From assembly GCA_963514005.1 (NCBI GenBank), contig OY740783.1, positions 120,280,001 through 120,344,000 on the forward strand: a DNA stretch of 64,000 bases. The letters run 5' to 3'. Position 1 is the stretch's first letter. Every line of letters starts with the position of its first letter. Of the stretch, positions 9,216 to 50,540 are shown in pieces. A program made the translations under genes and the position numbers. A model generated the notes under the pieces. It searched no databases, had not been told where the DNA came from, and was given only the letters and a program-made list of their open reading frames with translations. This DNA is from Raja brachyura. Lineage: Eukaryota.

Positions 9216-9277
9216 TTATTCTCCACTTGCATCCTCGGCCTGTTCTTTTGTATATACAACCGTTGCATAAATGCAGC
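9216..9277 (-). CDS. Siglec-15-like receptor, terminal coding exon (GCIYATVVYTKEQAEDASGE*) with ITIM-like motif
   Basis: Acceptor ttgtttatctttcag|; phase-1 entry in frame with exon B or repaired exon C; IYATV motif; TAA stop overlaps AATAAA; lies in non-repetitive sequence. Confidence 0.65.
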
Positions 9278-9428
9278 CTGAAAGATAAACAATTTCCATT
9301 TTAAGATTTTATGCTGTTATTGTAAGATTCTGCTACCTTGATTCAAAACATTGAGAACCATAGTTATACAACACGAAACCAGGCCCTTCGGCCCAACTTT
9401 CCAATGCCGATCAAGATGCTCCATATAC

Positions 9429-10461
9429 TAGGATGTTACAAAACTTACCTTGAGCAGCGCTGCAGTTCTGCCGCTCCCCGTGTGCGCCACTTTGGCGCCT
9501 TTCAGAGGGGGTTGGGCTTAAAGGTCCGTATTTCCACAGGCAGGAAAAATCAATGAATGTCGGGCGATTTCGTTGCGGAAGAAAAATCGCTCCGACATTT
9601 CATGAATGAAGGAATTTTTAAATTACTCTAAATTATTTGTTAACTAGAGTAATTTAAAAATCACCTTCAAAAGCCGTGAGAACTGACAACCGGAAGGATT
9701 TTGCGTAGGGGAGAAAAAAAGGTAAAGAGTTTATTTTTATATTAAAAGTTGTTTTTTCGGGAGGCTTTAATAATATTTTCATGTTGCGAAATGGGGTCCA
9801 AAAAAATGTATGAACAAACAGTATTTTTCCTCCCGACTTCACCGCTAACCGCAATGTTCCAATCCACCGCATTCCACTAAAACCCACTCGCTAGTTCATT
9901 TAAATGGCCATTAATTTACAGGAATCAACCACTAAATTCCTTCTATTTGGCCCAGAAATTCATGAAAATGAGATTTAATAATTATGTTATATTGTGGATT
10001 ATTGTGTGAATGTTATTTGGACACTTAGGCAATTAAAAAAAAGTTTATCTTTTCTTAAGAAATGGATAGATGTTTAGATCTACTCATTGAATTTTGTAAT
10101 TAGCTACACTTAGATAACTAACTAATTATATGCTTTAATTTCAGGTCATTCAAGTAAGATTGTTTCATATTTATTTCAGAATGCTTCAATCTATAATAAG
10201 TGAAAATTTCATTGAGTTCTATTAATTTTTAAGAAAGTTATGGGCTTTTAACTGATCCAGATCACAGCTTTTGAGTTAAGTCAATTGAAAGGCAATGGGG
10301 AACAAGATGCTAATTTCCGAGTATGAAAATGGCCATAACTTTCTTAATACTGAAGATATGAAAGTGAATTAGGTGTCAAATTAAACTTATTTTTATGCTT
10401 TATCTGATGGGATAAATTGCAGACTTGATTTTTAAAATCTCAAAATTTTGTAACATTGCTA
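9429..10461 (+). mobile_element. Non-autonomous hAT-like DNA transposon (copy 1)
   Basis: TIRs tagg-atgttacaaaa / ttttgtaacattgcta; catatac(t) target duplication; no coding capacity. Confidence 0.75.
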
Positions 10462-11639
10462 CATATACTCTAATCCTACATGCTTGTGTTTGGCCTATAT
10501 GCCCTCTTAACCTTTCCAATCCATGCACCTGTCCAAATATCTTTTAAATGTTGTCAGAGTGTCTGCCTCAACTACCTCCTGTGGAAGCTATTATACCATT
10601 CCATATACCATCACCCTCTGTGTGGAAAAGTTTCCTCTCAGGTTCCTAGTAAATCTTTCCCTTCGCATCTTAAACTTGTCCTCTCGCATTTGATTGCCCT
10701 ACTCTTGAAATAGATAGGTATGCAATCAACCTATCTATTCTCTTCATGAGAGGAAAACTTCTATTCTCTCAGACTCAGAGCCTATCCAGAACTGGAATCC
10801 TCTCTGCAAATTCAGTCAGCTTTCCACCCCAGACACAACATCCCCTCTCCACTATCATCTGATGGCCACTCTCTACAGTCTTTCACTCAAATGTTGGTTA
10901 CACAGGTATGATAAACCGATGACATGGTCATCCTGGTAGATTAGGGCTCCTTCTATTCTTCAATTGTGCCTGGCTTTCCCTGGACCTGCCGTCTCAATAT
11001 TAGATAATTGCTTGAATTCAACCCAGCTTGAGCAAGGCCAGGCTCTCTCACCCATCAGAGAACCAGCTTGTCAGAGACTCTCTCCTCTTTATTGTGGGTA
11101 CTCTTGGTCTTCTCATTGCCGGAGGGAACTTGCCCCATTCTGAAGCTCTTTGCTCCCACATTGACCCCTTCCCCCCATCATCCATCCAACCCCATGAGAC
11201 TGGGATCATCAGGTGTTTATAGAGTCAGAGTCATACAGTATGGAAACAGGCCCTTCGGCCCAACTTGCCCATACCTTCCAAGATGCCCATCTACACTAAC
11301 CCCACTTGCAGACATTTGGCCCATATGTCTCTAAACCAATCCATGTACCTGACCAATGTCTTTTAAATGTTGTCATAGTACCTTCCTTAACTACCCTCCT
11401 CTAGTAGCCCTGTCCACCACCCTCAGTGTGAAAAAGTTGGTCCTCTTTTTCCTATTATATCTTTTAGCTCTCATGTTAAACCCAAGTCATCTGGTTCTTG
11501 AGTTAAACCTATGTCCTCTGGTTGACAGCCGACTACACAGAGCCAAGCTACTGTCTGAGGAATCTTGTCGGCAGAATGTATGGAATAGGGAGGGAAGTTG
11601 GCCATTCAGCCACTCAAGACTGTTCTGCTATTCAACATG

Positions 11640-13380
11640 ATTGATGAAGAATATTGAGGCATTAGTCAAGCAAAAGGGGCATATGTCAGATATAGGCAGC
11701 TGGTAATCAAGCAAACTTCTCAAGTTTAAAGGGTGTAGGCTTACAATTTAGAGCAAAATCAGGAAGACAAAAAAGGGAAATGAGATAGCTATGGCAGATA
11801 ACATAACGGAGAATGCAGAGAAATTCTCAAAGTATATTAAGAGCAAAAGGCTAACTAAAGAGAATAGAATCAACATGGTCATCCATGGGAGATGGGCGAG
11901 GCTTTAAATTAACTTTTCCCATCTGTATTTATCCTGGAGTAGGTAATGGAAGTTAAGGAATTAAGAGTATTGAATTGTAATACATTGGAACATATCTACA
12001 TTACAAAAGAGGTGCTGGCAATTTATATTAAGGTAAATAAATGTCCAAGGTCTGATCAGGTGTATCCTAGAATATTGTGTTAAACTAGGGAAGAAATTTT
12101 CAAGTGCTCTGGCAGAGGCATTTGCATCATCTTTAACACAAGTGTGGTACTGGAAGATTGGAGGGTGGTTAATGTTGTGCCCCTATTTAAGAAGGTTCTG
12201 CAAGTACAAGACAGGGAACTACAGTGGTGAGGGAATTACTGGAGGGGATTTTGAGGGTCAGGATGTTAATTCTGGCCAAATTGGAGATGCCAGGACACTC
12301 AGATTGTGTAAAGGCTTCTGGCCATTAACCAAAAGGCTATAGGCCATTTGGTTAATTTAAATGTGCCTTCTGCAGAAATGGGCCAGATTGTCTAGAGCCT
12401 AGATAAGAGTTGCAGGGGACGAATGGGACTTCTGCGGATTCTTACAACTAGGTGTAAATTGCATGGAACGGTTTGGGTGAATGCAAACCAGACATACACA
12501 TTGTTAATATTGTTACAAAGCTTTACTTTGATAGATGTTGATTGGATTAAGTGTTGAGCCTTGTCTGGGTTTCTTGAATATCTGGACAAATGTTGCTATG
12601 TTAGCTTCCTTCCAGAAGCTCTGTTTGAATACAATGTATTGGTTAATGTATTATTGGGTTAGGGAAATGTCTATCATGTACTGTGTTAATCGATATCCGT
12701 TATTGGACTGTAAAGAGACCACCCCCATATGGTCCAGCCCCTCAAGGTTCAGGGAACAATAAAATGTAGCTCCCACGAGGTCCTGTGTCCCTTCTGGGAG
12801 AACGGTTAGGGCTGCGTGACCGTTTGGAGTGTCTCTGCTTGCACGAGGCTAGGAGGGCTTGGCCCAGCAGATACAAGGATCGAACCTACGGTGGTTAGGT
12901 ATTATAGTGGGGAACTGTTATTGTGTTTTTCCAAAATAAAATTTAGATGCACAAGTGCTTGACTCAGTATCTTATTGACTGAAACTAGACTGGGGGGAAG
13001 CTTAGTACGAGCTTTACAAGGATGTACAAGGTTGTACACGGATTTGCAAAGGTAACGACTGATGAGGGATAGTTAGCATGGCTTAGTGTGTGGAATTTGT
13101 GTGTGACTCATGAATTTGACTGAGCTTTTGACGAGGCGATGCGTCTATTGATGAGGGCAGAGCTGGTACACATGGCCTGCATGGACGTTAACAAGGCCTT
13201 TGCCAAGTTCTCACATGGCTTACTAGTCTGGAAGATTAAATCACATGAGGTCTAGGGTGAATGAGCCAATTGGATATGAATTTGGCTTGGTGGAAGGTGG
13301 TGGTGATGGGTTGTTATTCAGACCGGAGGCCTGTGACTAGTGGTGTAACACAGGGTTTGGTGCTGGGCCCACTCAGTATG
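11640..13380 (+). mobile_element. Old CR1 LINE remnant hosting the LTR insertion
   Basis: Decayed CR1 ORF2 (cctagaatattg, tggaagattggagggtggttaatgttgtgcccctattt, gtgactagtggtgta..gtgctgggccc) continuing across the LTR. Confidence 0.7.
12264..13018 (+). mobile_element. Solo LTR of an ERV-like LTR retroelement
   Basis: TG...CA termini; 4-bp TSD AGGA on both sides; AATAAA near the 3' end; homologous to 26537-27295. Confidence 0.85.
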
Positions 13381-13777
13381 AAATGGGTTTAATGTGTTCC
13401 CAAGGGGTGTCCTCACAGATGTGCGTATTTTGCCGCTTACGGTGTGATTGGTGGTCCTTACCAGTCTCCTCCTCTTTGCAGCGAGGTCTTTGAAAGTGCA
13501 CGTTGCTGTAGAGAGTGTTATTCTGAGACTCCTGGGGATCTGAAATGAACACAGATTGTTAGTGCACTCCAACATCTCTCCCCCACTGTATTCTATCAGT
13601 CAAACCGCCCACTCCCATTTCAACGACATTGGGACATGGACATGGATTGGAATGGTGTAAAAGGACATGGGCCAAATGCAGGCAGTTTGAACTAGTGTAG
13701 ATGGGGCATTTTGGTCGGCTTGAGCAAGTTGGACCAAAGAGCCTGTCTCTGTGCTCTATGACCCTATGAGTCCCCAC

Positions 13778-13862
13778 CATTGATTATCACTGCCTCTTGC
13801 CTGTTCCGATTGCCGCTCCTATAGTGGTCCATCTTTTGCCAAGACTATTCTTCACCCTCATT
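13778..13862 (-). pseudogene. Truncated duplicate of cytoplasmic exon C
   Basis: High identity to 28043-28128; acceptor and 5' part missing (abuts ERV internal sequence); CAG changed to TAG stop. Confidence 0.7.
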
Positions 13863-16110
13863 CTTCATTGCTGGGAGCGCTAATTCGAAAGGTGCGTTCC
13901 GAAAATTGGCATCGACTGCCAGCGCGAAGAGGCTAGTCACTGACACCCGGTGCCAAGCAGATGTAAGGGATATCTTTGTGTAGAGGTAAAACCTAGGTCG
14001 TTTAGAGGCCACACCTGTGTGACGATATCTGAATCCCTCCTTGAAGTGACGGATGAGGAATTTCGTAAAGGCACTGTGCTCGGTGGCTAGAGTATAGATT
14101 GGCTGGGAATACTGTAGTCCATACGAGATTTCATTGGGCAATTTAATTTGAATTTGAGAGCCCGCATATGTGGAGGGATATACACCAAAACTATTTGTTC
14201 CGAGAACGAGTTTAGATTTGCAGAATCAAATTTCCAAATACAGGATTTCACATTGAAGTTTTGCCCGTACGGTAGAATTCGAATTCTGTGTAAATAGAAC
14301 TTTGGAGTTTGTGCATGTTTGAGATTGATTTCGAATAGTGAATAGTAACCCTCAACAGTGAATAGCAACCCTCTGATCGATTGTTGATTAGTACCTGATA
14401 GCGAAGAGTAACTGAGAGATGGGAACCTGGTTTACTTGGTGAAAAGTACCCGGATGCGAGAGGTGCCCCTAATTTTGTAGAACAGAGAGGAGGGATAGAG
14501 GTCCCCCTATAAAAGTCCAGTCTTAGTAGGGGAAAGTAACATTTAGGAGGAAAGGTAGTCCATTTATGAAGTAGTACCCCTCAGCAAAGTGTACCCTAGG
14601 AAGGGGAAAATCTTTGGTATCAGAGGGAGAGGTTCACTGATTGATAACAGCGCGACGCGGCATTGAGATCGAGTGTTGGGAAACACTTTTAAATTATTAT
14701 TGCAAATTGTAAAAATCCAGCATCTTCTTTTTTAGCATCTTTATTGGATCCAAATTGTAAAAATAATTTGTGTATGTAAAAAGATTTAGAGTGTGTTAAG
14801 ATTTAGAGTGTGTTAAGATCGTGGACCGCTACTTGTATTGTCTGTGTGAGTGCTTAAGGATTTTTGGGAGTTAGATCATTGGAGTAAAAGTGTGTTTGAA
14901 TTGAATATTTGCATTTGTTTAAATCGGGATTGTAGTATGGTTACAATCCGATTCGTGGTGGTTTAATCAGTCTTCGTATTCTTTCGATCGCTGTGTCGGG
15001 GAGGAGTCATTCCATTGACCGAGTACGCCACGAGGAGGATTTATTAGTGTGATTTATCGTCATAATAAGTGGATGCTTGTATTTTATATTGCGGTGTGTC
15101 TCCGCATGAAGCAGAGAGATTAAGAAAATTATCATGAAAATTAAATAGTTTTTTGAGGAACAAACTTTGGTCGATAAGTGGGCTAAAATCTATATTAGGA
15201 ATAACCTACATGGAGATCATAGTTAGACAATATGGATATAGTGAAGAAGGGAACGAGCTTATTGAAATATGGAGAATGTTGTTCATTGAAAGGAAAGGAA
15301 ATAAAGAAATCCTTCTGCTTTCTACTTTAAGAATGGTAGCATTCAAATTTGGGATTAGAATGAAAAAAGAGAAAACTGGTCGTTCTCTAGACATTCCGGA
15401 ACAGGGAAAGGAAGATAGTGGAAGCCAGCAGCAGGTTCAGGAGCAGGAGAGAACATCAGCTTTTAAAAGAGAAATTACTGAAATGGCTCCTGAAAAGGGG
15501 AGGTGCTGACTAAAATCAAACTTATTAAATTTAGAGAGAGAAGCCCATTATATGCAAGGGTGGGCAGACTTTTTCGGAATAGAGTCACAGCATTCCTCTC
15601 AGCACTCTCATGTTCTTAGTTCGGAGACACCATGCACAGCTTGTGGACAAGGCGCTAGGGAAGCGTTAGTGGTATATTTGACTCCACCCACTAAATTCAA
15701 ATGCAAAGTAGGAAAATCGGGAAAGGACTCTCTAGCTCTGATGATTGCTTCACCAGCAGAGAATAGTATGGAGGATCAAGGAGCTAGAAGGAAAGTTCTG
15801 CAGAAGTGGGTGCCAAAATTAATTGGGAAATCAAGTGGGAAAGTGAAAGAATTCTTCCTAAAGTATAGAGATTCCGGTAGCAGAACGAGCAGCTTTTCTG
15901 AGGGTGAGACAGCAGGAGGCTATGAAGTGGCTGATCCTGACATCGATAACATTATAAGATCAGAACAAATTCCCGACGATATGGGTACAGAGCGGATTCC
16001 CCGTAGGCAATTCCCTAGTAGGAATCTGTCTACTCCGCCTTTAGAATTAGATCCCGCAGTAGGTGTAAATGATCCCCGGGCCACAGATGTCTACATTTCA
16101 ATCCCCCAAG

Positions 16111-16404
16111 CAGGGTGCAATGCCACCGAATTCAAGTGCAGTTTCATACCACTTCAAACAGGGTGCAAGGCCACCAAATGCAAATGCGGTTTCATGCCAT
16201 TTCATGCAGGGTGCAAGGCCACCAAATTCAAGTGCAGTTTCATGCCATTTCAAGCAGGGTGCAAGGCCACCAAATTCAAGTGCAGTTTCATACCATTTCA
16301 AGCAGGGTGCAAGGACACCAAATTCAAATGCAGTTTCCGACCACTTCAAGCAGGTTGCAAGGCCACCACATTCAATTGCAGTTTCATACATTTTCAAGCA
16401 GGGT
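16111..16404 (+). repeat. 48-bp minisatellite, about 6 units
   Basis: Unit cagggtgcaaggccaccaaattcaagtgcagtttcat(a/g)ccatttcaag starting at 16111, 16159, 16207, 16255, 16303 and 16351. Confidence 0.95.
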
Positions 16405-16614
16405 GAAACCACCATAAACCCACCATAAAACCACACAAAACACCACATAAACACCACACTCACAGTTAAGTATACATTCAGTGTGGTCAGTTGATTCACA
16501 GCTCAGACAGATTTGTGACCTCTCCCTCCCCCATCTTGCAGAGAATGAGCCACACCCACACTTCCGGGTTTTATAATCCCTCCCCCTCCTACCGGAGGGG
16601 GCATGGACTTCATG

Positions 16615-19560
16615 CCCGGTCTGCACCTGGGCTGGAATGGAACCAATGTCCTTGGGGGAGTGTTTGCTAGTGCTGTCGGGGAGGATTTAAACTAATGTGG
16701 CAGGGGGATGGGTACATTAAATACTATTAATGAGTATGATATAGTTGCGATCATGGAGACATGGCTCCAGGGTGACCAAGGCTGGGAGCTGAACATCCAG
16801 GGATATTCAATATTCAGGAGGGATAGAGAGAAAGGAAAAAGAGGTGGGGTAGCGTTGCTGGTTAGAGAGGATATTAACGCAATGGAAAGGAAAGACATTA
16901 GCTTGGAGCATGTGGAATCGGTATGGGTAGAGCTGCGAAACACTAAGGGACAGAAAACGCTGGTGGGCGTTGTCTACTGGCCACCTAACAGTAGTAGTGA
17001 AGTTGGGGATGGTATCAAACAGGAAATTAGAAATGCGTGCAACAAAGGCAAAACAGTTATAATGGGTGACTTCAATCTACATATAGATTGGGTGAATCAA
17101 ATTGGCAGGGGCGCTGAGGAAGAGGATTTTTTGGAAAGTATGCGGGATAGTTATCTAAATCAACATGTAGAGGAACCAACGAGAGAGCAGGCTATTTTAG
17201 ACTGGGTATTGAGTAATGAGGAAGGGTTAGTTAGCAGTCTTATTGTGCGTGCCACCTTGGGCAAGAGTGACCATAATATGGTCCAGTTCTTCATTAGGAT
17301 AGAGAGTGACATTGTTAATTCAGAAACAATGGTTCTGAACTTAAGGAAAGGTAACTTTGAGGGTATGAAACGTGAATTGGCCAAGATTGACTGGCAATCA
17401 ATTCTAAAAGGGTTGACGGTGGATACGCAATGGAAGACATTTAAAGATTGCATGAATTAACTACAAAAATTGTTCATCCCAGTTTGGCAAAAGAATAGAT
17501 CAGGGAAGGTAGTGCATCCGTGGATAACAAGGGAAATCAGGGATAGTATCAAAGCAAAGGATGATGCGTACAAAGTAGCCAGAAAAAGCAGCATACCAGA
17601 GGACTTGGAGAAAATCAGAGACCAGCAGAGGAGGACAAAGGGCTTGATTAGGAAAGGAAAAATAGATTATGAAAGAAAACTGGCAGGGAACATAAAAACT
17701 GACTGCAAAAGTTTTTATAGATATGTGAGGAGAAAGAGATTAGTTAAAACAAATGTAGGTCCCTTGCAGTCAGAAACAGGTGAGTTGATCATGGGGGACA
17801 AGGATATGGCGGACCAATTGAATAACTACTTTGGTTCCGTCTTCACTAAGGAAGACATAAATAATCTGCTGGAAATAGCAGGGGACCGCGGGTCAAAGGA
17901 GGAGTGAACCTTGAGTGAAATCCAGGTTAGTCGGGAAGTGGTGTTGGGTAAATTGAACAGATTAAAGGCCGATAAATCCCCAGGGCCAGATAGGCTGCAT
18001 CCCAGAGTACTTAAGGAAGTAGCTCTGGAAATATAGTGGATGCATTAGTGATAATCTTTCGAAACTCTTTAGATTCTGGAGTAGTTCCTGAGGATTGGCG
18101 GGTAGCAAACGTAACCCCTCTTTTTAAGAAGTGGGGGAGAGAGAAAACGGGGAATTACAGACCAGTTAGTCTAACATCGGTAGTGGGGAAACTGCTAGAG
18201 TCAGTTATTAAAGATGGGATAGCAGCACATTTGGAAAGTGGTGAAATCATTGGGCAAAGTCAGCATGGATTTACGAAAGGTAAATCATGTCTGACGAATC
18301 TTGTGGAATTTTTCGAGGATGTAACTAGTAGCGTGGATAGGGGAGAACCAGTGGATGTGGTGTATCTGGACTTCCAGAAGGCTTTCGACAAGGTCCCACA
18401 TAAGAGATTAGTATATAAACTTAAAGCATATGGCATTGGGGGTTCAGTATTGATGTGGATAGAGAACTGGCTGGCAAACAGGAAGCAAAGAGTAGGAGTA
18501 AACGGGTCGTTTTCACAATGGCAGGCAGTGACTAGTGGGGTACCGCAAGGCTCAGTGCTGGGACCCCAGCTATTTACAATATACATTAATGATCTGGATG
18601 AGGGAATTGAAGGCAATATCTCCAAGTTTGCGGATGCAACTAAGCTGGGGGGCAGTGTTAGCTGTGAGGAGGATGCTAGGAGACTGCAAGGTGACTTGGA
18701 TAGGCTGGGTGAGTGGGCAAATGTTTGGCAGATGCAGTATAATGTGGATAAATGTGAGGTTATCCACTTTGTTGGCAAAAATAGGAAAACAGACTATTAT
18801 CTAAATGGAGGCCGATTAGGAAAAGGGGAGATGCAGCGCGACCTGGGTGTCATGGTACACCAGTCATTGAAAGTAGGCATGCAGGTGCAGCAGGCAGTGA
18901 AGAAAGCGAATGGTATGTTACCTTTCACAGCAAAAGGATTTGAGTATAGGAGCAGGGAGGTTCTACTTCAGTTGTATAGGGTCTTGGTGAGACCACACCT
19001 GGAGTATTGCGTACAGTTCTGGTCTCCAAATCTGAGGAAGGACATTATTGCCATAGAGGGAGTGCAGAGAAGGTTCACCAGACTGATTCCTGGGATGTCA
19101 GGACTGTCTTATGAACAAAGACTGCATAGACTCGGTTTATACTCTCTAGAATTTAGGAGATTGAGAGGCGATCTTATAGAAACTTACAAAATTCTTAAGG
19201 GGTTGGACAGGCTAGATGCAGGAAGATTGTTCCCGATGTTGGGGAGGTCCAGGACAAGGGATCACAGCTTAAGGATAAGGGGGAAATCCTTTAGGAGCGA
19301 GATGAGAAGGACTTTTTTCACACAGAGAGTGGTGGGTCTCTGGAACTCTCTGCCACAGAGGGTAGTTGAGGCCAGTTCATTGGCTATATTTAAGAGGGTT
19401 AGATGTGGCCCTTGTGGCTAAGGGGATCAGAGGGTATGGAGAGAAGGCAGGTATGGGATACTGAGTTGGATGATCAGCCATGATCATATTGAATGGCGGT
19501 GCAGGCTCGAAGGGCCGAATGGCCTACTCCTGCACCTAATTTCTATGTTTCTATGTTTCA
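16615..19560 (+). mobile_element. CR1 LINE: ORF1 C-terminus plus near-complete ORF2 (APE endonuclease, RT), broken by a few stops and a frameshift
   Basis: ETWL, MGDFN, SDHN (APE); NYRPVSLTS, YLDFQKAFDKV, GVPQGSVLGP, FADA (for FADD); tail (ttctatgt)2; ttcatg at both junctions. Confidence 0.95.
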
Positions 19561-20307: not shown

Positions 20308-23300
20308 AATAGTAAGATTAAACGAGAACTTACCAGTTTGAAATTTGATCTTTATTTTATGAGGAGTTACGATGAGCGATTCCGTGAAGAACCCCACCAG
20401 TCCACATGCGCGTCAATCTTCAAAGCAGCGGTGTGAAATCACAGAATTACAGTAATTGAAATAACATAGTAAGATTATAAACCTAGAACTACCAGATGAC
20501 CTTTCCGATATGAGGCTTGGGAACGGTGGGTACGTAATCGCTCATCGTAAATCCTCATAAAATAAAGATCAAACTTCAAACTGGTAAGTTCTCGTTCAAT
20601 CTTACAATTTTACTTCGGAGTCACGTGAGTGATTCCGTGAAGATTTCAAAGCTCTGTGATTTCATGCCGTAGATACGAATCCAGGCGTCTCACTGCAGCA
20701 ATTGACTCAGGATGAGTGAATAGAACAATGCATTGAATCATGACATTGATTTGAAACGTTAACGGTTTATTTAACAAAGAAACAATATCAACCCCTATCT
20801 CCCAGGGGGGCTATGAAACAGAACTTAAAATGGATTGGGCGAATACCCCTGGTTCGGTAAGCAGCTTCTTATAGAACCTTTGAAAAGTCAGTTCATTTGA
20901 CCATTCTGCGGTCGCGAGGATATGGTCTAGAAGGACGTCCATTGCCCTCGCTGCTGACGTTGATGCCGCCCTGGTGGAGTGAGATTTTAAATGGTCAGTG
21001 TCCAGTCCTGCATTCACGAGAACCTGTTTCAGCCACCTTGAGATGGTCTGAACCGACACCATCACATGCGTTTTTTTGTGGTTAATAAGTAATGCTGATT
21101 CAAAACCTCTGAGGCTCTTGGTGACCTTAATATAATATAGCAAGTGTGACACTATGCACAGTCTTAAATCCGTGGGATATGCCGAAAATATAACCTTGAA
21201 CCCAGATACCCCTGGTCTGCTATGTTTAATTAAATCATAAATGTAAAACGTAATTTATTACCAGATGATACCATCCTGTCTAGTCGCAGCTTCTGCAATG
21301 TCTGGACCCATTGTGCTGAAACCAGCGCCATAAGCATGACCACCTCAAGGGTGATTTTGGGCAAAGACAGGGATGTGGCTAAGCAGCGGGAACACCATGC
21401 TCACATCCCAGATTTCTGAGTAACTGGGTCTGGGGGTTTGGAATTAAAAATACCCCTCATAAACTGAGATATTAAAGGGTGAGATCCAACTGAATGTTGA
21501 TCCGACCCCAGCCATAAGTATGATGACAGGGCACTCCTGGCACTATTGATGGCACTATAGCTCAACCCTTCATCAAAATATAACATTGACAGAGATTCTA
21601 GCACATCTGCGATGCATGCCGTATGATATGCAATGTTCCCCTGTGAACAGAACATCTCCCATTTCCTGATATGAGAGGTATACTATTTTTTGGTACTATC
21701 CCTTCAGGCCGCAGCTATCACATCCACGGTACGGTCAGATAGTCCAAGCCCCAGGTATGGCCTCCTCAGAATCTGCAAATTAACAGATCAATACGATCAT
21801 GTAATGGATGTAAATTCCCATTTACAGGGTGCACCAGTAGGTCACTGCGTTTTGGAACACCCATAATTGGCTGTGTTGTTATCTCCAAAATGAGAGGGAA
21901 CCATGCCTGAGTAGGCCAGTCGGGTACCACCAATATTTCTGAAGCGGAGTCCTGCTTGATCTTGAACAAGCACCAACTGATGATGCAAAATGGAGGAATT
22001 GCATATAAAAACATTCCACCCCAATGTAGTGAGAATGCATCTACCGCTAATGCCCCAGGGTCTGGTTCCCATGAAACATATTTGGGTAACTGGTGATTGA
22101 GTCTGGATGTAAACAAATTGATATCTGGCATCCCATATTGAACAACAATATCATTAAATATTTCAAGATTCAACATCCATTCTGTGTTGTCATTGAATTT
22201 GCGTGGCGTGGTGTCTGCCACCATGTTGAGTCTACCTGGTAGGTAGATAGCTGAAACCCAAATATTTCTTGTAATGCACCAATGCCAAATAAGATTAGCC
22301 AATCTATCACAAGATTCTGACTTGATTCCACCCATGTGATTAACATATGCTACTGCCGTAGTGTTGTCACTCTGAAGTTGAACATGTAAGTGACTCATGG
22401 TTGTACAATAAGCTTTAAGTCCATGAAACACTCCCAATAGCTCTAAATAATTAATTCCATGTGATTGGAGAATAAATGCCTCGTGCATATTCCATCTGCC
22501 CCCACAGCTAGAGATGGTATCCGTAGCACCCCAACTTAAGGCACTAACATCAGTCTGTAAAACAACTGAAGGTTCCTCAACCAGAATTTTGCTGGAGCAA
22601 TTTGAGATGTTCATTATCCACCAGTGCAATTCAGCAATGGCTTCAGCTGGTAATTGCATGAGCCTGTCGAAATGACCTGCATGTATTCTGAGTGCCTGTT
22701 CTTTTGCACGTTGTAAATTTTGGTAATGCAAAGGTCCATACTGTGCAGCTGGAAAAGCAGCCACTAATTTGCCAACCAGGCTGGCCACCTGCCAAATTGA
22801 AGGTTGTTGCTCCTTCATGAGCTTGTTACAGCCTTCAATTACATTTAATCTCTTGTCCCTGGGCAAGGTCACTAGCATGTGAGTTGAGTTAATAGTGAAT
22901 ACCGAATAATCAATAATTTTAACTCATATCAATTTGGATTTAAGTGGATGAATGAGGAACCCCAATCTCTCAAACAAGAGTTTAACAACTGAGACTGATA
23001 ATTCAGCTGTTTCCCGGGTCTTTCCTATTTTCAAGATATTATCCAAATAAGCTATTACAATATGGCCCTGAGCCCGGAGTAGCCCCAATACTGGTTTTAA
23101 CAGTTTTGTAAATAATCTGAGTGCCGAGGTTAACCCATTAGGCAGTGCTTTAAATTGCCATAATTGTCTCATCCACCTAAATTTCAGATATCTCTGATGA
23201 TCCCTATGAACCGCAGCCCTCTGGCACTCAACGGTCCTTTAATAAGTCTTTGCCTCATTGTCCAGTTCTTTGACTCTTTTTGCGAGGTCTTCACCAAACA

Positions 23301-32513: not shown

Positions 32514-32585
32514 CTGGCTCTGGTCCTTGTGGTTTCCGACCATTGGCCACGCTGGCATTAACACAACACACACGCTGCTGTGAAC
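32514..32585 (-). CDS. Siglec-15-like receptor, cytoplasmic exon A (GSQQRVCCVNASVANGRKPQGPEP)
   Basis: Acceptor ttcctgtgtctttgacag|, donor CCAG|GTAATA, 72 nt, phase 1-1, open. Confidence 0.7.
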
Positions 32586-36776: not shown

Positions 36777-37139
36777 CCACAACCTCAAGTTTCATCTCAT
36801 CCTGAGTTACCGTCTCCTGTGTGGAATTCCTGACCCATACGTAACAGAAATAGTCACTGCTGTCGTCCAGTCTGAGCTCCTTCACTCTGATAGAGGCTTC
36901 TCCCTGGTCTAATTTTCCCACCAGCTCATATCGACCTCCTCCCTTTACAGTGACAGTGTAGGGAGGGTTCACAGAGTGGGGGTGGGTGTGATTAAAGACT
37001 GTGGACTGTTCCCGTGGATTCCCCTTCATCCAGCGGACAGTGATGGGGCTGGGATTCTTGCTCAAGGGGCTGAAGGAGCATGGCAGTGTGGCTGAATCTC
37101 TTCTCTTCCCAATCACCATGGATGTATTCTTCTTTCCAT
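36777..37139 (-). CDS. Siglec-15-like receptor, exon 5: V-set domain V4
   Basis: 363 nt, phase 1-1, open. ATLPCSF..W..RYELVGKLDQGEASIRV..DSSDYFCYV. Acceptor ttctctttacaag|, donor G|GTAAGG. Confidence 0.85.
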
Positions 37140-37372
37140 CTTGTAAAGAGAAAAGTTGTATTTAACAATCTATTCCACATCGTTTATAAAAATACATCAT
37201 CTATGCCTGTGACTTTGATTCTCCATCCCACTCCTGCTCTGATCTGTCTGTCTCAGACCTCCTGCACTGTTCTAATGAGGTCCAATCTCAAGCAACAGCA
37301 CCTCATCTTCTGTCTGGGCAGCATGAAGCCTTTGTGCTAACATTTAATGCAACAATTTCAATAACTTACTTA

Positions 37373-37654
37373 AGGGCCTGTCCAACCTACGCAATTTCTT
37401 AGGCCACTACAGGCGACTGGGCAGTCGCCACACGGTCGCCGGGTGTCACCTCTATGGTTGTGAGTCATCTCCTCAAGTCGCCCAAAGAGTTGTAGTGTTT
37501 TTCTGTTCGCCACTGGATTTTGAAATGGTCAAAAGGTGCCGATGCTGACTTCGGTGAATTCAATTGGCGACTACCTACGTCAACCAGAAACAGGTACCGG
37601 CATCAAGAGAAGTCTTCAGTTGTCTTCAGTTGTCACCGAAGAGGGATAGGCCCT
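37373..37654. mobile_element. PIF/Harbinger-like MITE
   Basis: TIRs agggcctgtcc / ggataggccct flanked by TAA/TTA; about 280 bp, non-coding. Confidence 0.6.
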
Positions 37655-39054
37655 TTACTGTTTGTATAAGAACTGGTCAGAACTGCCTCTGAAGTCAATA
37701 TTACCTGACCCATACCACCATAACCATAGGCTGATGACAATATCACTGGAGAAGCCACAAGACCCGTCAACACCAACATTGGAGATGAGACAGTGGCGTT
37801 CGCCTCTGTTCAAACATGAGAAAGTGAAGCCAATTGCAAGAGTACAGTCCACATGAGTGGCAGCACAAATATCAAACCCACACATGGGCTGTAGTGTGCT
37901 TATTGAAAATGCAAGATATCATGAGGAAGGCAGATAAACGTAGAACTGTAGAAAGATACTGCAATTTTTAATCTAAATGCAGGTATAGGCAGAGAAATGG
38001 CAGATGGAGTTTGATCTGAACATGTGTGAAGTGTTGAGTTTGGGAGGTTGAATGCAAGTGGAAAGTATACAAGGCCAAGACCCTTAAAACTACTGATGTA
38101 CAGAAAAATATTGGGATCCAATTCCATAACTCCCTGAAAATGGCAACACGTTAAAAATGTGTACAGTATGCTTGCTTTCATTGGTCAAGGTACTGAATAC
38201 AAGATGTGTAGGAAGGAACTGCAGATGCTGGTTAAAACCGAAGATGGACACAAAAAGCTGAAGTAACTCAACGGGACAGGCAGCATCTCTGGAGAGAAAG
38301 AATGGGTCACGTTTCAGATCGAGAAGAAGATACTCGACCTGAAACGTCATCCATTCCTTCTCTCCAGAGATGCTACCTGTCCCAGTGAGTTACTCCAGCT
38401 TTTAGTGTCTATCTGCTGAATACAAGAGTCAGGAAGTCATGTTGTAGCTCTATACAACTTTAGTTACGACACTGGGATTATTGCATTCAGTTTTATGTGC
38501 AGTTCTCACCCATTACAGGAAGGATGTGGAGACTTTGGAACGGGTTCAGAAGAGGTTTACCAGAATGCGGCCTGGATTAGAGGGTATTAGTTATAAGAAA
38601 AGGTCGGACATACTTGAACTGCTTTCTCTGGACTGTTGAAAGTTTATAAAAATATGAAAGACATGGATAGGAGAGAGAGTCAGAACCTTTTGCCTATGGC
38701 GGAAATGTCAACGAATAGATGAGATTGTGATAAGGACAGAGGGGAAAGGTGAAAGGAGATATATGGGAAAAGTTAATGTTTACACCGAGGGTGGTGGGTG
38801 CCAGGAAAATACTGCTATGGGTGGAGGTGGAGGCAGCTACGATAGTGGAGTTTTAGAGGCTTTTTGAAATGCAGGTAATGGAAGAAATGTATCACCTGCA
38901 GGTAGACGAGATTAACATAGCATCATGTTTGGTACAGACATTGCGGGCCTAATGGCCTGTTCCTGTGCTGGTCTACGCTGTCAGTGGGAGCTCATTCCTC
39001 TTAAGGTTGTTCAATATGATATTATCATTTACAGCATAAAATACGTTTCCTTAC

Positions 39055-39417
39055 CCATAACCTGCAGTTTCACCTCATCCTGATTCACAGTCGTCAACTT
39101 TGAATTCCTGATAGAAACGTGACAGGAGTAATCACTGGCGTCACCCACTTTGAGTCCCTTCACTCTGATGGAGGCGTCTCCCTGCGCAAGGTTTCCCACC
39201 AGCTCATATCGATCTTCTTCATTTACATTTTCAGGAATGCGATGTGCTGCTGGGCGGGGAGAAGTGTGACGAAAGACAACAGACCATTGTGGTGGATTCC
39301 CCTTCATCCAGCTGATGGTGATGGAGCTGGGATTCCCGTTCGACGGACTGAAGGAGCAGGGCAGTGTGGCAGTCGCACCCTTCCTCCCAATCACCATGGA
39401 TGCTCTGTCATTATCAC
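39055..39417 (-). CDS. Siglec-15-like receptor, exon 4: V-set domain V3
   Basis: 363 nt, phase 1-1, open. ATLPCSF..W..RYELVGNLAQGDASIRV..DASDYSCHV. Acceptor tgcaag|, donor G|GTAAGG. Confidence 0.85.
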
Positions 39418-39779
39418 CTTGCATAGAGAAGAGTTTTAAAGTGTGAATACAATTTAGTAATTGACCACAAAAACCACACGGTCTTTGTCAATAGTTCATC
39501 CACACTTGTGTCTTGCATACTCCATCCCATTCCCACTCTGATCCATCTGTTCCTGACCTTCTGCAGTATTCTATTAAGGGCCAATCTGAACTAAAGACAT
39601 ATCAGCTTTAGTCTGGACAAGATGGAGCCTTCATGGCTCCAATTGAGTTTTGACCTTGAAGACGAGGAACTGGAGAGGAGGATGACTAAAGGCGTGGTTA
39701 GCTGAATCAGATGGGGTGGGGGGGGGGGGGGTCTTAGGGTCTGCACCATAAGCTCATCTGCGAGAGGCGCGGTTCATAG

Positions 39780-40800
39780 GATTATACGTGATTCTACTCC
39801 TGAATTAGACCATTCGGCCCATCAAGTCTACTCCGCCATTCAATCGTGGCTGATCTATCTCTCCTAACTCAATTCTCCAGCCTTCTCATAACCTCTGACA
39901 CCTGCACTAATCAGGAATCGATTAATCTCTGCCTTAAATATATCCACTGACCTTGCCTCCACAGCCTTCTGTGGCAAAGAATTCCAAAGATTCACCACAC
40001 TCCGACCAAAGAAATTCCTCCTCATTTCCTTCCTAAAAGAACGTCCTTTAATCCTGAGGCTAAAACCTCTTGTCTTAGACTCTCCTACTAGTGGAAACAT
40101 CCTCTCCACATCCAGGTCTTTCACTATTCTGTCTGTTTCAATGAGGTCCCCCCCTCATTCTTCTTAACTCGAGCGAACATAGGCTGTCAAATATTAATCT
40201 GATGTTATCCTACTGATTCCTGGGATCATTCCTGTGAACTTCCTCTGGACCCTCTCCAGAGCCAGCACATCCTTCCTCAGATATGGTGTCCAAAATTGCT
40301 CACAATATTCCAAATGTGGCCTGACCAGCGCCTGAAAGAGTCTCAGCATTACATCCGTACTTTTGTATATAAACCCTCTCGAAATAAATGCTAGCATTGC
40401 GTTTGCCTTCTTTACAACCGATGCGAATTGAAGATTAACTTTTTGGGAATCCTGCACCAGCATTCCCAAGTCGCCTTGCACCTCCGATTTGTGGATTCTC
40501 TCCCCAATTAAAAAATAATCAACGCCTTTAATCCTATTACCAAAATACATGAATCCGCACTTTTCCATCTGCCACTTCTCTGCCTACTCTCCCAACCTAT
40601 CCAAGTTCTTCTGCAGAGTCCCTGCTTTCTCTGCACTACCTGCCCCTCCACCTATTTTCGTATTAACCGCAAACTTGGCCACAAAGCCTTCAATCCCCTC
40701 ATCCAAATCATTAAAATACAATGTGAAGAGCAGCGGCCCCAGCACCGAGCCTTGCGGAACTCTGCTAGTAATTCGCAGCCAACCAGAAAAAGCCTGGTTA
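39780..40800 (-). mobile_element. CR1 LINE 3' fragment
   Basis: VPQGSVLGPLLF, KKANAMLAFI, LVRPHLEYC, FRKEMRRNFF. Confidence 0.9.
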
Positions 40801-42451
40801 ACCGAATCAGGAGGGGTGGGGGTTTTTAACTTCCGTGCCCTAATCCCCCCCACCGCACACCACCCCTGGGGAAGAAGGGCTGAAGAGGGCTGTGCAAGGT
40901 AAGAGTCAACATTCCAGGCAACATTCCAGGGCCTCTGTGGCCACTGCAACGAGGACTGAAAATGGTGCAAAATGGTTGCCCAGACTTAGTGGGTTCTTCT
41001 GTACATTATGTACTAACCGGGGGGATTGTGCTTATTTATGTAAGGTGATATTGTTACTGATCTGTATGAAAAAAGTATTTCATTGTACTTGGTACATGTG
41101 ATAATAAAGAAACCATTGAACCGAATATAGACACAAAATGTGGAGTAATTCAGCGGGCAGGCAGCATCTCTGGGTAGAATGAATGGGTGAAGTTTTGGGC
41201 CGTGACTCTTCTTCAGGAGAACTGAATCAGCATCGCAGATGCTGTAAAACTCACCAGTTCTGATACAATCAGCGAGCAAGTCACCAGAAATTGTTCTATT
41301 CAAGGTTGACCCATTGAACCATCGAGTCAACATTGAATACAACAATTTCTGGTAACTTTCTCGCTGTTTGTATCAGAAGTTCTGCAGCAGGTTATCCATC
41401 TGCGATACTGACTCAGTTCTCCTCTCTCCACTGACACTGCCTGATCTGCAGGGCGTTTCTTGCAGCTCTGACGTGTATTTTGCAGCTCTGGTTTATATCT
41501 TTGTTTGTGTTCTCTGTCTCCAGTTTCCTTCCTTAATTTATCGACCAGATAGTTTCATCAACTGCAAACCTAGACTCACCCTTTCAGAGATATTTCCTAT
41601 TTCCAATCCACCCCTCTATGCAGCCTCTGCAACTTCAGCTAACTTATTTTAAGTTGCAATAATCATTAAGAGAATAACTGATTAACATTCCATTTTGCTT
41701 ATCTTCAGTAGAACTGGTTAGTTCTGAGAAAAGAGAGAAAAAGTAACATCCAAAATTCTTGAATTCAATGCAATCTGGAATGATGCAAATTGCATTAGAC
41801 TGGTTATAAGAAATTCACAAAAATTAGTCAGAGGCGGAATTGCATGGATGATTAAAATTCCAAGCAACAGAAAGCTCAGGATTAACCATGTAGATTGAAT
41901 AAAAAGTTTTCCCTCGTTTCCCCGCCCATCATCTGCATTTATTCCTTAGGAAAGCAGCCAACATAATCAAGGATCACTCACACCCGAGCTACTCTCTCTT
42001 CTCCCCTCCGCGTTACCAGAACCAGAGGACGACAACAATGTCACTGGAGGTCCCATGACTATCCCATGAACACCAGCAATGGAGATTAGACATGATGTTC
42101 ACCTATGTTTAACCACTAGAAAGTGAAGCCAATCACAAGAAAGTAGACTCAAAACATGGCAGCTGAAATGATCAACCTGTCCATTCCCTCCCGCACACAC
42201 AGGTATCTCCAGATACATGATCACCATCGCTCCAAGATGGTGGCTGAAGCCTAGAGAGGGATAAAAGTCAATTACATTCACTGTTATTCATTGGTGCAGG
42301 GGGAGAACCAGGAAGGGGTGAAGATTTGAAAGAGACGCAGCAGGAGAATGGAGTGAAAATATTCTGAGAGGAAACAGAACAAAGCTCATTCTTCTCACCG
42401 GTGTTCAATGTGATTTTATCATTTACTCCTCAACACTGACTGTTTCCTTAC

Positions 42452-42820
42452 CCAAAACCTGTAGTCCCGTCTCATCCTGAGTCACCTGAATATCTTTCTT
42501 CAGAGGGGATTTCCAGATCCAAACATGACAGAAATAGTCGTTGGTGTCATTCAACGTGAGTCCCCTCACTCTGATGGAGGCGTCTCCCTTGTCTACGTTT
42601 CCCACCAGCTCATATCGACCTCCTCTATTTACATTGTCAGTGCCATGACCGCTTGTGAGGTAGGAGCGGGTATGATTAAAGACAACGGACTCGGCCCATG
42701 GAGTCCCCTTCATCCAGAGGATAGTGATCACCCTGCGATACGCGCTCGAAGGGGTGAATGTGCAGCTCAGTGTGGCACCACCTCCTCGCTTCCCGATCAC
42801 CATGGATGAGCTGACATCAC
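42452..42820 (-). CDS. Siglec-15-like receptor, exon 3: V-set domain V2
   Basis: 369 nt, phase 1-1, open. ATLSCTF..W..RYELVGNVDKGDASIRV..DTNDYFCHV. Donor G|GTAAGG; rare GAG acceptor (ttcgag|). Confidence 0.8.
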
Positions 42821-42920
42821 CTCGAAGAGAGAAAGATTTAAAATATGGACATTATACATTGGTCGGATGCATTAAGCACATTTACTTTATCAATACTTCA
42901 CCTGTGTCTGTGACCATGTT

Positions 42921-47456: not shown

Positions 47457-47840
47457 CTGATACTGTGATTGGCCCATGTGGGCATCCAAACTTTGCTCCT
47501 GCTTGCTCTGTGAGCTCAACACGACAGTTGAGGATCTTGTTTGTAACCGTTGTTCTCAGCTGATTAATGATTATGGAAGCATCGTTCTTCCGAGGGTCCC
47601 CCATTGGTTTGTAGCGAGTTCCTACATTTTTCGGGATGTTATTGATATACTTGCCGCTTAATAGATGATATGTGTATTTGAAAAAGGTCTTCTTGGTCTC
47701 CTTCACACTCCAGATGATGTTGATGTTGCCGTTGTATTCATGGTGAGGGTGAGTGAACTTGCAGTACAGAACCACGAGCTTCCCCTTCCTCCCCATCACC
47801 TTGTCCGGTGTCTCCATGGTCCAACCACTGCCACTGCAGC
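47457..47840 (-). CDS. Siglec-15-like receptor, exon 2: N-terminal V-set Ig domain V1 (keeps the sialic-acid-binding Arg)
   Basis: Acceptor tctctgtgtcttcacag|, donor TCAG|GTGAGG, 384 nt. WTMETP..VVLYCKFTHPHHEYNG..IW..RYKPMGDPRKNDASI..CRVE parallels the recalled Siglec-15 V-set (WSMQVP..VLPCTFTHPHRHYDG..GNPRRNDLSL..CRVE). Confidence 0.9.
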
Positions 47841-49239
47841 CTGTGAAGACACAGAGATGTAAGGTTAAGACTGAACTGAGGGCCACAGTCACTGTAGGAG
47901 GCTGCACCCACCCTGGGTCCCTGCCCTAGTGGAAGGCGGTTGAACTGCGATGCTGCTGTGCTGTTTGTCACCCTCACCACGTGGTGAGCTGTGAGAAATG
48001 GGAGAGGTGGGACTGTGAAACTATCAGTGGTTCCCCTTCTCCGGGCTGTGCTGGCTCTTCACTGGAGCCACATCTCTCACAGCTTTAAGCTGCTGTCCTG
48101 GAGGGACCTTGCATTTACATCAATTCCCTCACAGTCAGGGGATGGTCCATAGAGCTTCACAGGTTTGAAATGTCGGTGGTGAAGTAGCGATGGAAATGCA
48201 ACAGGCAAGTAGTGCACAGAAAGATCCCACTAAGGATGTACCTGAGTACAAGTCATTGGTTTCCACAGCTGGCACAGTGGAGTAGCTAGTGGAGCTGCTA
48301 ACGCACAACTCTAGGGATTCGGAGTTTAATCCTGACCTCGGATGCTGTGCGTAGTTTGCACTTTCCACCTATAACTGCATGGGTTTCTCTTTCTTAGGTT
48401 GTTACCCAAGTCCCAAAGATGCGCATCGTTAATTAACAGACTATAAGTTGCCCTCAGTGTTTTGGTGAGTGGTCGAATCTGGGGCTGGGGAGCCATGGAT
48501 TGATTTTTGAGCTGAATTACTGCTCAATTCTTGTGATATTTGCTGTGCTAATCCACAAGAATTCTGGTTACTGCTCCAATGCTCGGGACATTTTAATTAC
48601 TGCACTAATTTTTGTGACTTTCTCGTTTCTGCTCTACATTCTAGGGGCATTGGACCAGTTCTGCAGCAGGAAAGACCTCTCCAAGATCAATGGGTTGCAC
48701 CTCAGCCACACTGGGACAATGTCGTAGTAGGGAGATTTATTGGTGCACGAGGAAGAGTTTGAACAGGCAAAGTAATGGATCAGTATCTATTACTAGTGTG
48801 TGGCAACAGAAAAGAGAAATAAGGTGCACCAAGATTGCGAGTGGCAGATAGCACAAAAGTAGTAAATATGTGAGTGAGCCTGGTTATTCATAATTAGAAA
48901 TATCTATGTGGGAAAATGATGCAGAGTCGGGGCAGGACCAGATATTTAATGAAGACAAGAGGTGTTGATAATGGAGAGGGAAGGGACATTTTAGATGGGG
49001 CGGTAATACTGATTGAGGAAAATTAAGTTTAGTTTATTATTTTCATGTATGCTGAGATAAGCGAAAAATTATTTTTTGTGCTACCCGGCTAAATTGTACC
49101 ATTCATGATTACATCAAGTAGTATATTAGAGAAAACAGAGTAAAGAAAAAAGCATTACATCTACAGAGGAAGAGTCGTTTAAAACAAATGTTTGTGGCCA
49201 CAACAAGGTATATTGGAAAATTGGGAATTCATTCTTAGC

Positions 49240-49778
49240 ATAAAATCATAGAATCATAGAAAATAGGTGCAGGAGTAGGCCATTCGGCCCTTCGAGCCTG
49301 CACCGCCATTCAATATGATCATGGCTGATCATCCAATTCAGTATCCTGTACCTGCCCTCTCTCCATACCCCCTGATCCCTTTAGTCACAAGGGCCACATC
49401 TAGCTCCCTCTTAAATATAGCCAATGAACTGGCCTCAACTACCTTCTGTAGCAGAGAATTCCACATACTCATCACTCTCTGTGTGAAAAATATCTTCTCA
49501 TCTCGGTCCTAAAAGACTTCCCCCTTATCCTTAAACTGTGACCCCTTGTTCTGGAGTTCCCCAACATCGGGAACAATCTTCCTGCATCTAGCCTGTCCAA
49601 CCCCTTAAGAATTTTGTATGCCTCTATAAGACTCCAATCTCCTAAATTCCAGCGAGTACAAGCCGAGTCTATCCAATCTTTCTTCATGTGGAAGTCCTGC
49701 CATCCCAGGCATCAGTCTGGTGAACCTTCTCTGTACTCCCTCTATGGCAAGAATGTCTTTCCTCAGATTAGGGGACCA
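49240..49778 (-). mobile_element. CR1 LINE 3' fragment
   Basis: YKILKGLDRLDAGRLFPMLG..RTRGHSLRIRG; (ttctatga)n tail. Confidence 0.9.
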
Positions 49779-50491
49779 TCATATGAGATGTTATTTTGAG
49801 AAAGGTATTATCCCTGGTGCAGGTGTTCACTGTGCCTCAGTACATGTGACAGTAATAAACCAAAACCATTTTGATTCGGATCAGAATCAACAATGAGAGC
49901 AAACACATTCTGAGCAACACAGGAAGCCATTCGGCTGTTCAAGCCTGGTCAACAGTCAATATGATTATGGCTCTTAATCCCTAATCAATACAGACTTGAA
50001 CTTTGTCCCCATTCCCCTTGATTTCTGTAGCCTGGAGTAATATTCAGCTCCTTGCTGAAGACAAGGTGGCTTGGCTTAAACTACTTTTAATTCGATAAAT
50101 CTATAGGTGCATTACTCCCAGAGAAGATATTTCTCATCATCTTCATCTTTAAACTATGCCAAGGACACAATGCCCTTCACCCCCTCTCAAGGACTAATAT
50201 CTTCATCCAGAAGTGTGGGTTCGACAACTAAATACAACCTCCCTAGCTGCCCTGACCAGCATTATAATCTCAAACCGATCCTTTACTGTATTGTAAAATG
50301 TTTGTATTAAAGGTCTTCACACATACACATATTCCCTTTCTGGAAGACTGCCTGTCACCTTAAGTACAGCATCAAAAGACCAATCCTGCTCTGTTTCCAC
50401 GACACACAACTCTATCTCATACAGTTAATCATTTCACTCACATTGAAACAGCCTGAAAACCAAAAGCTGCTCCTTATTAAAGGATACTTAC

Positions 50492-50540
50492 GATCAGCGG
50501 TGACAGGCAGTGCAAAGGCACAAAGCAAAATGAACAGCAT
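50492..50540 (-). CDS. Siglec-15-like receptor, exon 1 (signal peptide MLFILLCAFALPVTAD)
   Basis: ATG at 50540 with A at -3; hydrophobic 16-codon leader; ends GATC|GTAAGT (phase 1), matching the phase-1 acceptor of the V-set exon at 47840. Confidence 0.8.

Follow-up and report, generated by a model that had tools for sequence, protein, structure and literature searches.

Siglec-15 has been described as a conserved activating receptor with one V-set and one C2 domain and a Lys in the transmembrane (TM) segment, and fish have been reported to be without CD33-related inhibitory Siglecs (PMC7226832). Sialic acid is contacted by the Siglec-15 side chains R143, W44, Y154 and Y87 (PMC10264397). Elsewhere in the family, Siglecs 5/14 and 11/16 form pairs in which a partner with an immunoreceptor tyrosine-based inhibitory motif (ITIM) and a DAP12-type partner have a near-identical ectodomain, and Siglec-12 of primates has two V-set domains (PMC6288428). 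The gene described here lies on the minus strand of a 64-kb stretch of Raja brachyura contig OY740783.1 (the window, whose numbering is used throughout) and is predicted to encode a Siglec-15-like receptor with four V-set domains, a TM segment without Lys and a tyrosine-rich tail. An earlier note on the same DNA had proposed a cartilaginous-fish offshoot of Siglec-15 that lengthened by multiplication of V exons and became inhibitory, possibly as one partner in a paired activating and inhibitory family; it had also taken a single V-set domain as the rule for Siglecs, to which Siglec-12 is a known exception (PMC6288428).

Structure of the gene and identity of its domains

Reading of the DNA indicates that the locus is a real, intact receptor gene, encoding a predicted type I membrane protein with the order signal peptide (SP), V1, V2, V3, V4, C2, neutral TM and tyrosine-rich tail. 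The gene spans ~41 kb. Its exon borders and phases were read from the DNA and then checked with a border- and phase-checking script, which gave twelve exons, each with AG acceptor and GT donor and all in phase 1. All twelve are open, no frameshift or stop interrupting any of them, and Cys, Trp and Arg are retained at their positions. The first exon (50492-50540, 49 nucleotides (nt)) holds the start codon and the signal peptide MLFILLCAFALPVTAD and ends in phase 1; the same or nearly the same peptide is found inside Amblyraja P0002 and Rhinoraja P0154. The V exons V1 (47457-47840, 384 nt), V2 (42452-42820, 369 nt), V3 (39055-39417, 363 nt) and V4 (36777-37139, 363 nt) follow, and a single exon of 375 nt (35751-36125) encodes both the C2/I-set domain and the TM helix. 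The placement of C2 and TM in one exon agrees with the earlier note, as does the TM segment itself, which has no charged residue and no Lys. The ectodomain of four V exons and one C2 exon departs from the two-domain V+C2 plan of canonical Siglec-15, and the TM Lys with which that receptor pairs with DAP12/DAP10 is absent.

The chain joined in the earlier note from phase-1 exons, running from SP to tail, was recovered with every named exon present and bordered by AG/GT. The SP, V1-V4, C2+TM, t1, t2 and last exons sum to 2154 nt, equal to 717 codons and a stop, and the addition of tail exons t3-t5 gives 2388 nt or 795 amino acids (aa); both protein lengths are sums of exon lengths, searches and folding having been done exon by exon. 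A fifth, frameshifted V exon ("exon C") named in the earlier note could not be identified. A hidden Markov model (HMM) derived from the V1-V4 exons was scanned against all six frames of the window and gave no further V-like exon, the next match having E 0.03 on the other strand; a fifth or decayed V exon was rejected. A division into two genes, with V1 apart from V2-C2, was also rejected, on the grounds that there is no second signal-peptide exon, that V2-V4 start in phase 1 and that V1 stands directly before a V2-type domain in every relative.

V1, which contains CKFTHPHHEYNG and LNCRVEL, is clearly a Siglec-15-like domain as judged from its sequence and modeled fold. Its best sequence match among solved structures was human Siglec-15 (7ZOZ, E 2.6e-12), followed by P0, CD33 and CAR at E 0.004-0.03. 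An AlphaFold2 model built from a 34-sequence alignment (predicted local distance difference test (pLDDT) 95) had 7ZOZ as its best Foldseek match, with template-modeling scores of 0.85/0.87, a root-mean-square deviation of 2.0 Å and E 3e-11, while CAR D1, Nav beta2, P0 and sialoadhesin were runners-up at scores of ~0.65-0.72. The Arg of LNCRVEL aligns with human R143 in a column that is invariant in alignment A1, and alignment with the 7ZOZ sequence places the Trp of GWTM at W44 and a Phe at the Y154 position. V1 is thereby an N-terminal V-set domain with a predicted F-strand Arg and predicted A- and G-strand aromatics. The Pfam V-set match of V1 (E 3.6e-5; 24.4 bits) is slightly below the 26-bit cut-off; those of V2, V3 and V4 have E 3.7e-14, 1.1e-13 and 2e-13.

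V2, V3 and V4 are V-set domains of a second type (V2-type), 52-57% identical to one another and 26-34% identical to V1. His, His and Tyr stand at the position of the V1 Arg (YFCHVWI in V2, YSCHVSI in V3 and YFCYVWV in V4), and all three are without the A-strand Trp. The top single-domain sequence match of V2-V4 in the PDB was Siglec-15 (E 3e-9), with TIM-3 and others close behind. The lower-confidence model of V4 (pLDDT 75) gave no Siglec-15 signal, its matches all being generic V-set folds (NKp44, TCR V and Nav beta4), and so does not decide where the V2-type domain came from. This domain may well derive from a Siglec-15 V domain.

The C2 exon matched I-set, Ig_3 and Ig_2 in Pfam. Its match to human Siglec-15 was only E 0.0095, ranked under titin, contactin and MuSK, and the C2+TM exon scored 28-35 bits against Siglec-15 of birds, lungfish and coelacanth in a small local set, so that the Siglec-15 specificity of the C2 domain is weak at most. 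The Siglec-15 signatures that the earlier note saw in both V1 and C2 are consequently upheld for V1, for which 7ZOZ is the top match by sequence and by fold, and are weak for C2.

Cytoplasmic tail

Tail exon t1 (32514-32585, 72 nt) encodes SQQRVCCVNASVANGRKPQGPEP and is 85% identical to Leucoraja P0149; it also matches Rhinoraja P0154 and, weakly, Mobula P0004 (E 0.046). Exon t2 (30849-30965, 117 nt), 95% identical to residues 632-670 of P0149, carries DPIYSVV, which is ITIM-like only; PIYSVV has Pro at -2 and is a YxxV motif. The last coding exon (9216-9277, 62 nt) encodes (G)CIYATVVYTKEQAEDASGE and the stop, with an 80% match to residues 773-792 of P0154, and contains GCIYATV, where Cys occupies the -2 position. 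The terminal IYAxV is kept from chimaera to skates and is present in the tails of Mobula, Heptranchias, Narcine and Callorhinchus.

These three exons made up the tail in the earlier note, a model that was correct for each of them and incomplete, as three phase-1 exons of 78 nt had been overlooked. Exon t3 (28530-28607) encodes DPCDSPDALIYSIVHIQ, is 92% identical to the P0149 tail and is also present in P0154; its LIYSIV fits the consensus ITIM [SIVL]xYxx[ILV]. Exon t4 (27730-27807) encodes DPQESQNNALYGNV, with ALYGNV, which is not a consensus ITIM. Exon t5 (13462-13539) encodes DPQESQNNTLYSNV, 73% identical to residues 741-772 of P0154, and its TLYSNV fits the TxYxxV pattern of an immunoreceptor tyrosine-based switch motif (ITSM). 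Exons t4 and t5 are duplicates of one another and their use is uncertain; each lies in one copy of a direct intragenic duplication of 1.6 kb (12263-13862 with t5 and 26536-28128 with t4, 87% identical). The two tyrosine motifs that the earlier note called ITIM-like are thus present, although neither is a consensus ITIM, and a consensus motif enters the predicted tail through the candidate exon t3.

The tail of Rhinoraja longicauda P0154 matches t1, t2, t3, t4/t5 and the last exon collinearly, and the order of tail exons is common to the Rhinoraja, Leucoraja and Mobula models. Together with the neutral TM and with LIYSIV and TLYSNV in the tail exons, this order agrees with the inhibitory type proposed in the earlier note.

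Lys-bearing partners in cartilaginous fishes

Proteins with a homologous ectodomain, a charged TM segment and a short tail were found in related species. The Lys type is built from a V1-type domain, one V2-type domain, C2, a strongly conserved Lys-containing TM segment (GMLCLIPLIKFLLLLITGIILF) and a tail of 4-18 aa. The TM segment ...CLIPLIKFLLLLITG... occurs in ten elasmobranch species (Leucoraja, Rhinoraja, Pristis, Hypanus, Mobula hypostoma, Heterodontus, Chiloscyllium, Rhincodon, Cetorhinus and Mustelus), and the Lys form is also present in Callorhinchus. The partners are Leucoraja P0156, Rhinoraja P0155, Pristis P0157, Hypanus P0160, Mobula P0012, those of five sharks, and Callorhinchus P0009. 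NCBI names the Lys-TM proteins of sharks and rays (P0155-P0157, P0160, P0164, P0168, P0170, P0012) "Siglec-15", except for two that are under other NCBI names. Since their TM segment resembles that of bird and mammal Siglec-15 (...PLGIKVLILLVILG...), the Lys-type proteins look like true Siglec-15 orthologues. The occurrence of Lys-TM, short-tail partners in sharks, rays including skates, and chimaera indicates that the idea of a paired family, which the earlier note had raised as a possibility, holds.

In the V1 domain of shark and ray Lys-type proteins, the Arg that would contact sialic acid is replaced by Leu (Y.CLV.) in all eight of the eight proteins with a readable motif. In the neutral-TM forms the Arg is mostly kept, the ITIM form of Mobula birostris having Gln; consensus ITIMs of the relatives include LIYSIV, SLYSNV, ILYSSV, VIYSTV, VIYSVV, VIYAVV and IIYSTI. 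The Callorhinchus Lys form P0009 retains the Arg, and its V domains are nearly identical to those of the ITIM forms P0096 and P0169.

A different, Arg-containing TM segment (...LRALAIRAAIYAVYFLMIGF...) was seen in Rhinoraja longicauda P0152, P0161 and P0162, the sequences of which hint at a third signaling type in the family.

Relatives with four V domains and trees of the V domains

Relatives were sought with V1 as a HMMER query against 1.84 billion proteins and with the Amblyraja protein in a word-index search. The family was recovered through the cartilaginous fishes, and no database protein was identical to the window gene. Isoform X3 of Leucoraja erinacea LOC129695366 (P0149, 694 aa) has the order V1(R)-V2(H)-V3(H)-V4(Y)-C2, a neutral TM and t1-t2-t3, and is collinear with the window at identities of 70% for V1, 81% for V2, 78% for V3, 93% for V4, 78% for C2+TM, 85% for t1, 95% for t2 and 92% for t3. 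Amblyraja radiata LOC116971578 (P0003) has the order V1-V2-V3-V4-C2 with the same residues at the Arg position. Both models follow the window exon by exon at 70-95% identity; against the other skate proteins, V1 shows 70-76% and V4 91-96% identity. The two RefSeq models thus share the ectodomain order of the window gene, and that of Leucoraja adds the neutral TM and three tail exons; they differ in being from other species or paralogues, and the Amblyraja model is without a TM segment and ends in an alternative terminus of 24 aa. RefSeq thus already contains predictions of the four-V architecture, under no other name than "uncharacterized protein". The earlier note had left room for the architecture being already well described; the models exist, and in the literature searched on Siglecs and Siglec-15 in cartilaginous fishes and on siglec15l no paper was found that describes such receptors.

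Amblyraja P0003 departs from the C2 exon near 35863, upstream of the TM, and its last 24 aa (EFVGRSGCDSVLRSSLFFKCLGII) map to 34903-34974 on the minus strand of the window with 96% identity. This segment may be an alternative 3' exon giving a secreted form; a clean acceptor was not found for it in the window.

Trees of the V domains were built only from proteins found with V1 and contained no CD33, MAG, PILR or CD300 outgroups. The V1-type and V2-type domains formed clades with support of 99/96 and 99/95. The window V2, V3 and V4 each paired one to one with their Amblyraja and Leucoraja counterparts (100/100, 100/100 and 100/99), which together with their mutual identity bears out the lengthening by V-exon multiplication proposed in the earlier note. 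V4 fell together (99/90) with the single proximal V (domain 2) that the Lys-type skate proteins and Rhinoraja P0154 possess, and V2 and V3 branched within a skate-only group (88/70). From these groupings, V4 is the original membrane-proximal V domain, and V2 and V3 are copies gained in the skate lineage. The V1-type, V2-type and bony-vertebrate Siglec-15 V domains formed a fork without a resolved order.

The number of V domains also varies elsewhere, with three V1-type copies in Callorhinchus P0096 and two V2-type copies in Heptranchias P0158. In the lungfish Protopterus annectens, P0001 has a tandem row of seven Siglec-15-type V domains that bear the Arg, together with C2 and a neutral TM, and P0007, a Lys-bearing Siglec-15, has two V domains. 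The lungfish proteins indicate that multiplication of V domains in the Siglec-15 lineage is not confined to cartilaginous fishes.

Transcript-like contigs

Contigs of three sequencing runs (X1-X3) were compared over the 6000 bases of 34850-40849; X1 is only guessed to be RNA. The X1 contigs skip introns, whereas those of the DNA runs X2 and X3 follow the window through its introns, X2 being identical to it. Record 1 of X1 (2306 nt) joins V4 (36777-37140) directly to C2+TM (36123-35749) and continues for 1577 nt beyond the donor, a length that would fit, if weakly, a multi-exon tail and ~1.1 kb of 3' untranslated region, compared with the poly(A) signals at 8277 and 8108. Record 6 (1145 nt) joins V3 (39055-39418) to a second V3-like exon and a further 416 nt. 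Divergence of X1 from the window amounts to 2% in each of V3 and V4; for C2+TM it reaches ~8%, made up of 19 substitutions (5%) and an in-frame deletion of 12 nt. The contigs prove the splice borders and tandem V splicing for the gene family, from a paralogue or close relative. Of the transcript junctions that the earlier note had proposed to examine, that of V4 with C2+TM is accordingly seen in X1, from a source that is not the exact locus.

The two tandem V3-like exons of record 6 are arranged as in Amblyraja P0002, whereas the window has V2 upstream of V3. Paralogues that differ in their sets of V exons are therefore apparently expressed.

Surroundings of the gene

Retroelement open reading frames (endonuclease and reverse-transcriptase-like) lie at 16708-19421 (+), 21401-24213 (-), 6825-7811 (-), 52907-53602 (-) and 62474-62935 (-), occupying the large tail intron and both flanks, and the window showed no cellular gene besides the receptor gene. 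Very high-copy repeats are located at 38050-38450, in the interval between V4 and V3, and at 39650-40450, upstream of V3; in the DNA runs the summed contig depth of the repeats is 1e5-3e6 compared with 10-40 over exons. A tandem array at 15950-16500 with units of ~16 aa (FKCSFMPFQAGCKATK...), readable in several frames, adjoins an insertion of a long interspersed nuclear element. At 54515-54658 on the minus strand there is a 75% match to residues 184-231 of the N-terminally over-extended Rhinoraja P0154, for which either a repeat common to the two or a non-coding exon upstream could account.

Discussion

The gene probably encodes the inhibitory arm of a paired Siglec-15 system, with V1 as the lectin, V2-V4 as a stalk and a tail that recruits SHP-type phosphatases, V2 and V3 having arisen by duplication in skates. 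In the proposed mechanism, the membrane-distal V1 would bind sialylated glycans through the F-strand Arg. V2-V4, which are without the Arg and Trp, would serve mainly as a stalk that lifts V1 about three Ig domains from the membrane, or might bind another ligand. Having no TM Lys, the receptor would not pair with DAP12. When phosphorylated, a tail with LIYSIV, TLYSNV and the terminal IYATV would recruit SHP-type phosphatases and damp cell activation, and the activating arm would be the form with a Lys-TM and a short tail, which goes by the NCBI name Siglec-15. V4 would be the ancestral proximal V domain, to which exon duplication in the skate lineage added V2 and V3.

Several observations weigh against this proposal. 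For the lectin, V1 has Lys at the position of human Y87 and is without the C95-C104 disulfide, and zebrafish Siglec-15 is a poor glycan binder according to the account in PMC7226832. For the tail, the tyrosine motifs DPIYSVV and GCIYATV are not consensus ITIMs, and the use of t3, t4 and t5 is based on gene models of other species, the inclusion of t3 coming from the Leucoraja and Rhinoraja models only. Exons t4 and t5 are 88% identical and their flanks 87%; because the exons are no better conserved than the flanks, one of the pair may be unused. For the four-V ectodomain, no contig joins V3 to V4 or V1 to V2, the comparison having covered the 6000 bases of 34850-40849, and the differences of these contigs from the window point to a paralogue or close relative. 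The V exons are all of phase 1-1, so that any could be skipped, and there are Rhinoraja models that hold V1 and a single V2-type domain.

The last two points are the core of a rival explanation in which V2-V4 are cassette exons, most receptors have fewer V domains (e.g. V1-V4-C2) and the four-V form is minor or computed only. Symmetric exons keep the frame when skipped, other Rhinoraja models have two V2-type domains, at least three isoforms are predicted for Leucoraja, and X1 contigs stop exactly at the 3' border of V3 and the 5' border of V4. However, contig breaks at exon borders can also be explained by words repeated among paralogous exons, and record 6 of X1 has at least two V exons in tandem with its 416 nt upstream. 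Gnomon models in two genera contain the four V exons in order, and V2, V3 and V4, all with frames and splice sites intact, are each conserved across three skates. Predominant skipping is on balance unlikely.

Quite doubtful is a second rival, in which the tyrosines of the tail serve chiefly as YxxPhi sorting signals and the receptor internalizes or clears sialylated cargo instead of signaling inhibition. Several Siglecs are endocytic, and DPIYSVV, ALYGNV and CIYATV fit YxxPhi and not the ITIM consensus. Set against this, the predicted tail has a consensus ITIM in LIYSIV and an ITSM-like motif in TLYSNV, and relatives have several consensus ITIMs (VIYSVV, VIYAVV, ILYSSV, IIYSTI, VIYSTV and SLYSNV). 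Partners with a Lys-containing TM are moreover the usual setting of true inhibitory receptors (PMC6288428).

A third rival, that this member of a tandem family is silent or decaying and that its paralogues are the expressed genes, would accord with the RNA-like contigs differing from the window, with the several paralogues in Amblyraja and Rhinoraja and with a 26-kb tail region full of retroelements, but is very improbable for a gene whose twelve exons are open, in phase and bordered by AG/GT, with no frameshift or stop and with conserved Cys, Trp and Arg.

The inhibitory arm proposed for Raja brachyura may, more tentatively, belong to an old paired Siglec-15 system. The DAP12 arm of that system would be Arg-less in sharks and rays. 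Its ITIM arm would usually bear the Arg and vary its reach by multiplication of V domains, with four V domains in skates, a triplicated V1 in chimaera and, independently, seven V domains in lungfish. If this is true, early jawed vertebrates would have had inhibitory sialic-acid sensing by kin of Siglec-15 long before CD33-related Siglecs, and the number of V domains would be a tunable stalk setting cis versus trans access to ligand. Apart from this wider reading, the skate gene and its relatives indicate that the Siglec-15 lineage in cartilaginous fishes is a paired activating and inhibitory family with two to four V-set domains, and seven in a lungfish relative, which changes the picture of how the sensing of sialic-acid "self" was wired in early jawed vertebrates; the gene models are already in RefSeq, and the functions are inferred.

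Bony-vertebrate Siglec-15 (7ZOZ) shares with V1 the F-strand Arg, the A-strand Trp, the G-strand aromatic and CxFTHPH, and has a C2/I-set domain before the TM segment. It differs in having one V domain rather than four, a TM Lys, a short tail free of ITIMs and the C95-C104 disulfide. The canonical Siglec-15 TM pattern ...PL(G)IK.L.LL... is present in the Lys-type paralogues of cartilaginous fishes and absent from this gene. In the siglec15l proteins of teleosts (e.g. Conger P0039), ITIMs and a neutral TM likewise accompany a V domain of Siglec-15 type, but that V domain is the only one, and the V-domain tree sets these proteins in a bony-fish clade of their own.

Siglec-12 is of inhibitory type. 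It resembles the skate receptor in having more than one V-set domain and differs in being CD33-related and of independent origin, in having two V domains and not four, and in the several C2 domains that follow them. Callorhinchus shows the pattern of pairs 5/14 and 11/16 (PMC6288428), the V domains of its Lys and ITIM forms being near-identical, as would be expected under gene conversion. Unlike those pairs, the proteins here are kin of Siglec-15, with Lys and ITIM forms in chimaera, sharks and rays, and the two arms diverge at the Arg position: the activating arm of sharks and rays has Leu and most inhibitory arms have Arg, whereas in Callorhinchus P0009 the Arg is kept.

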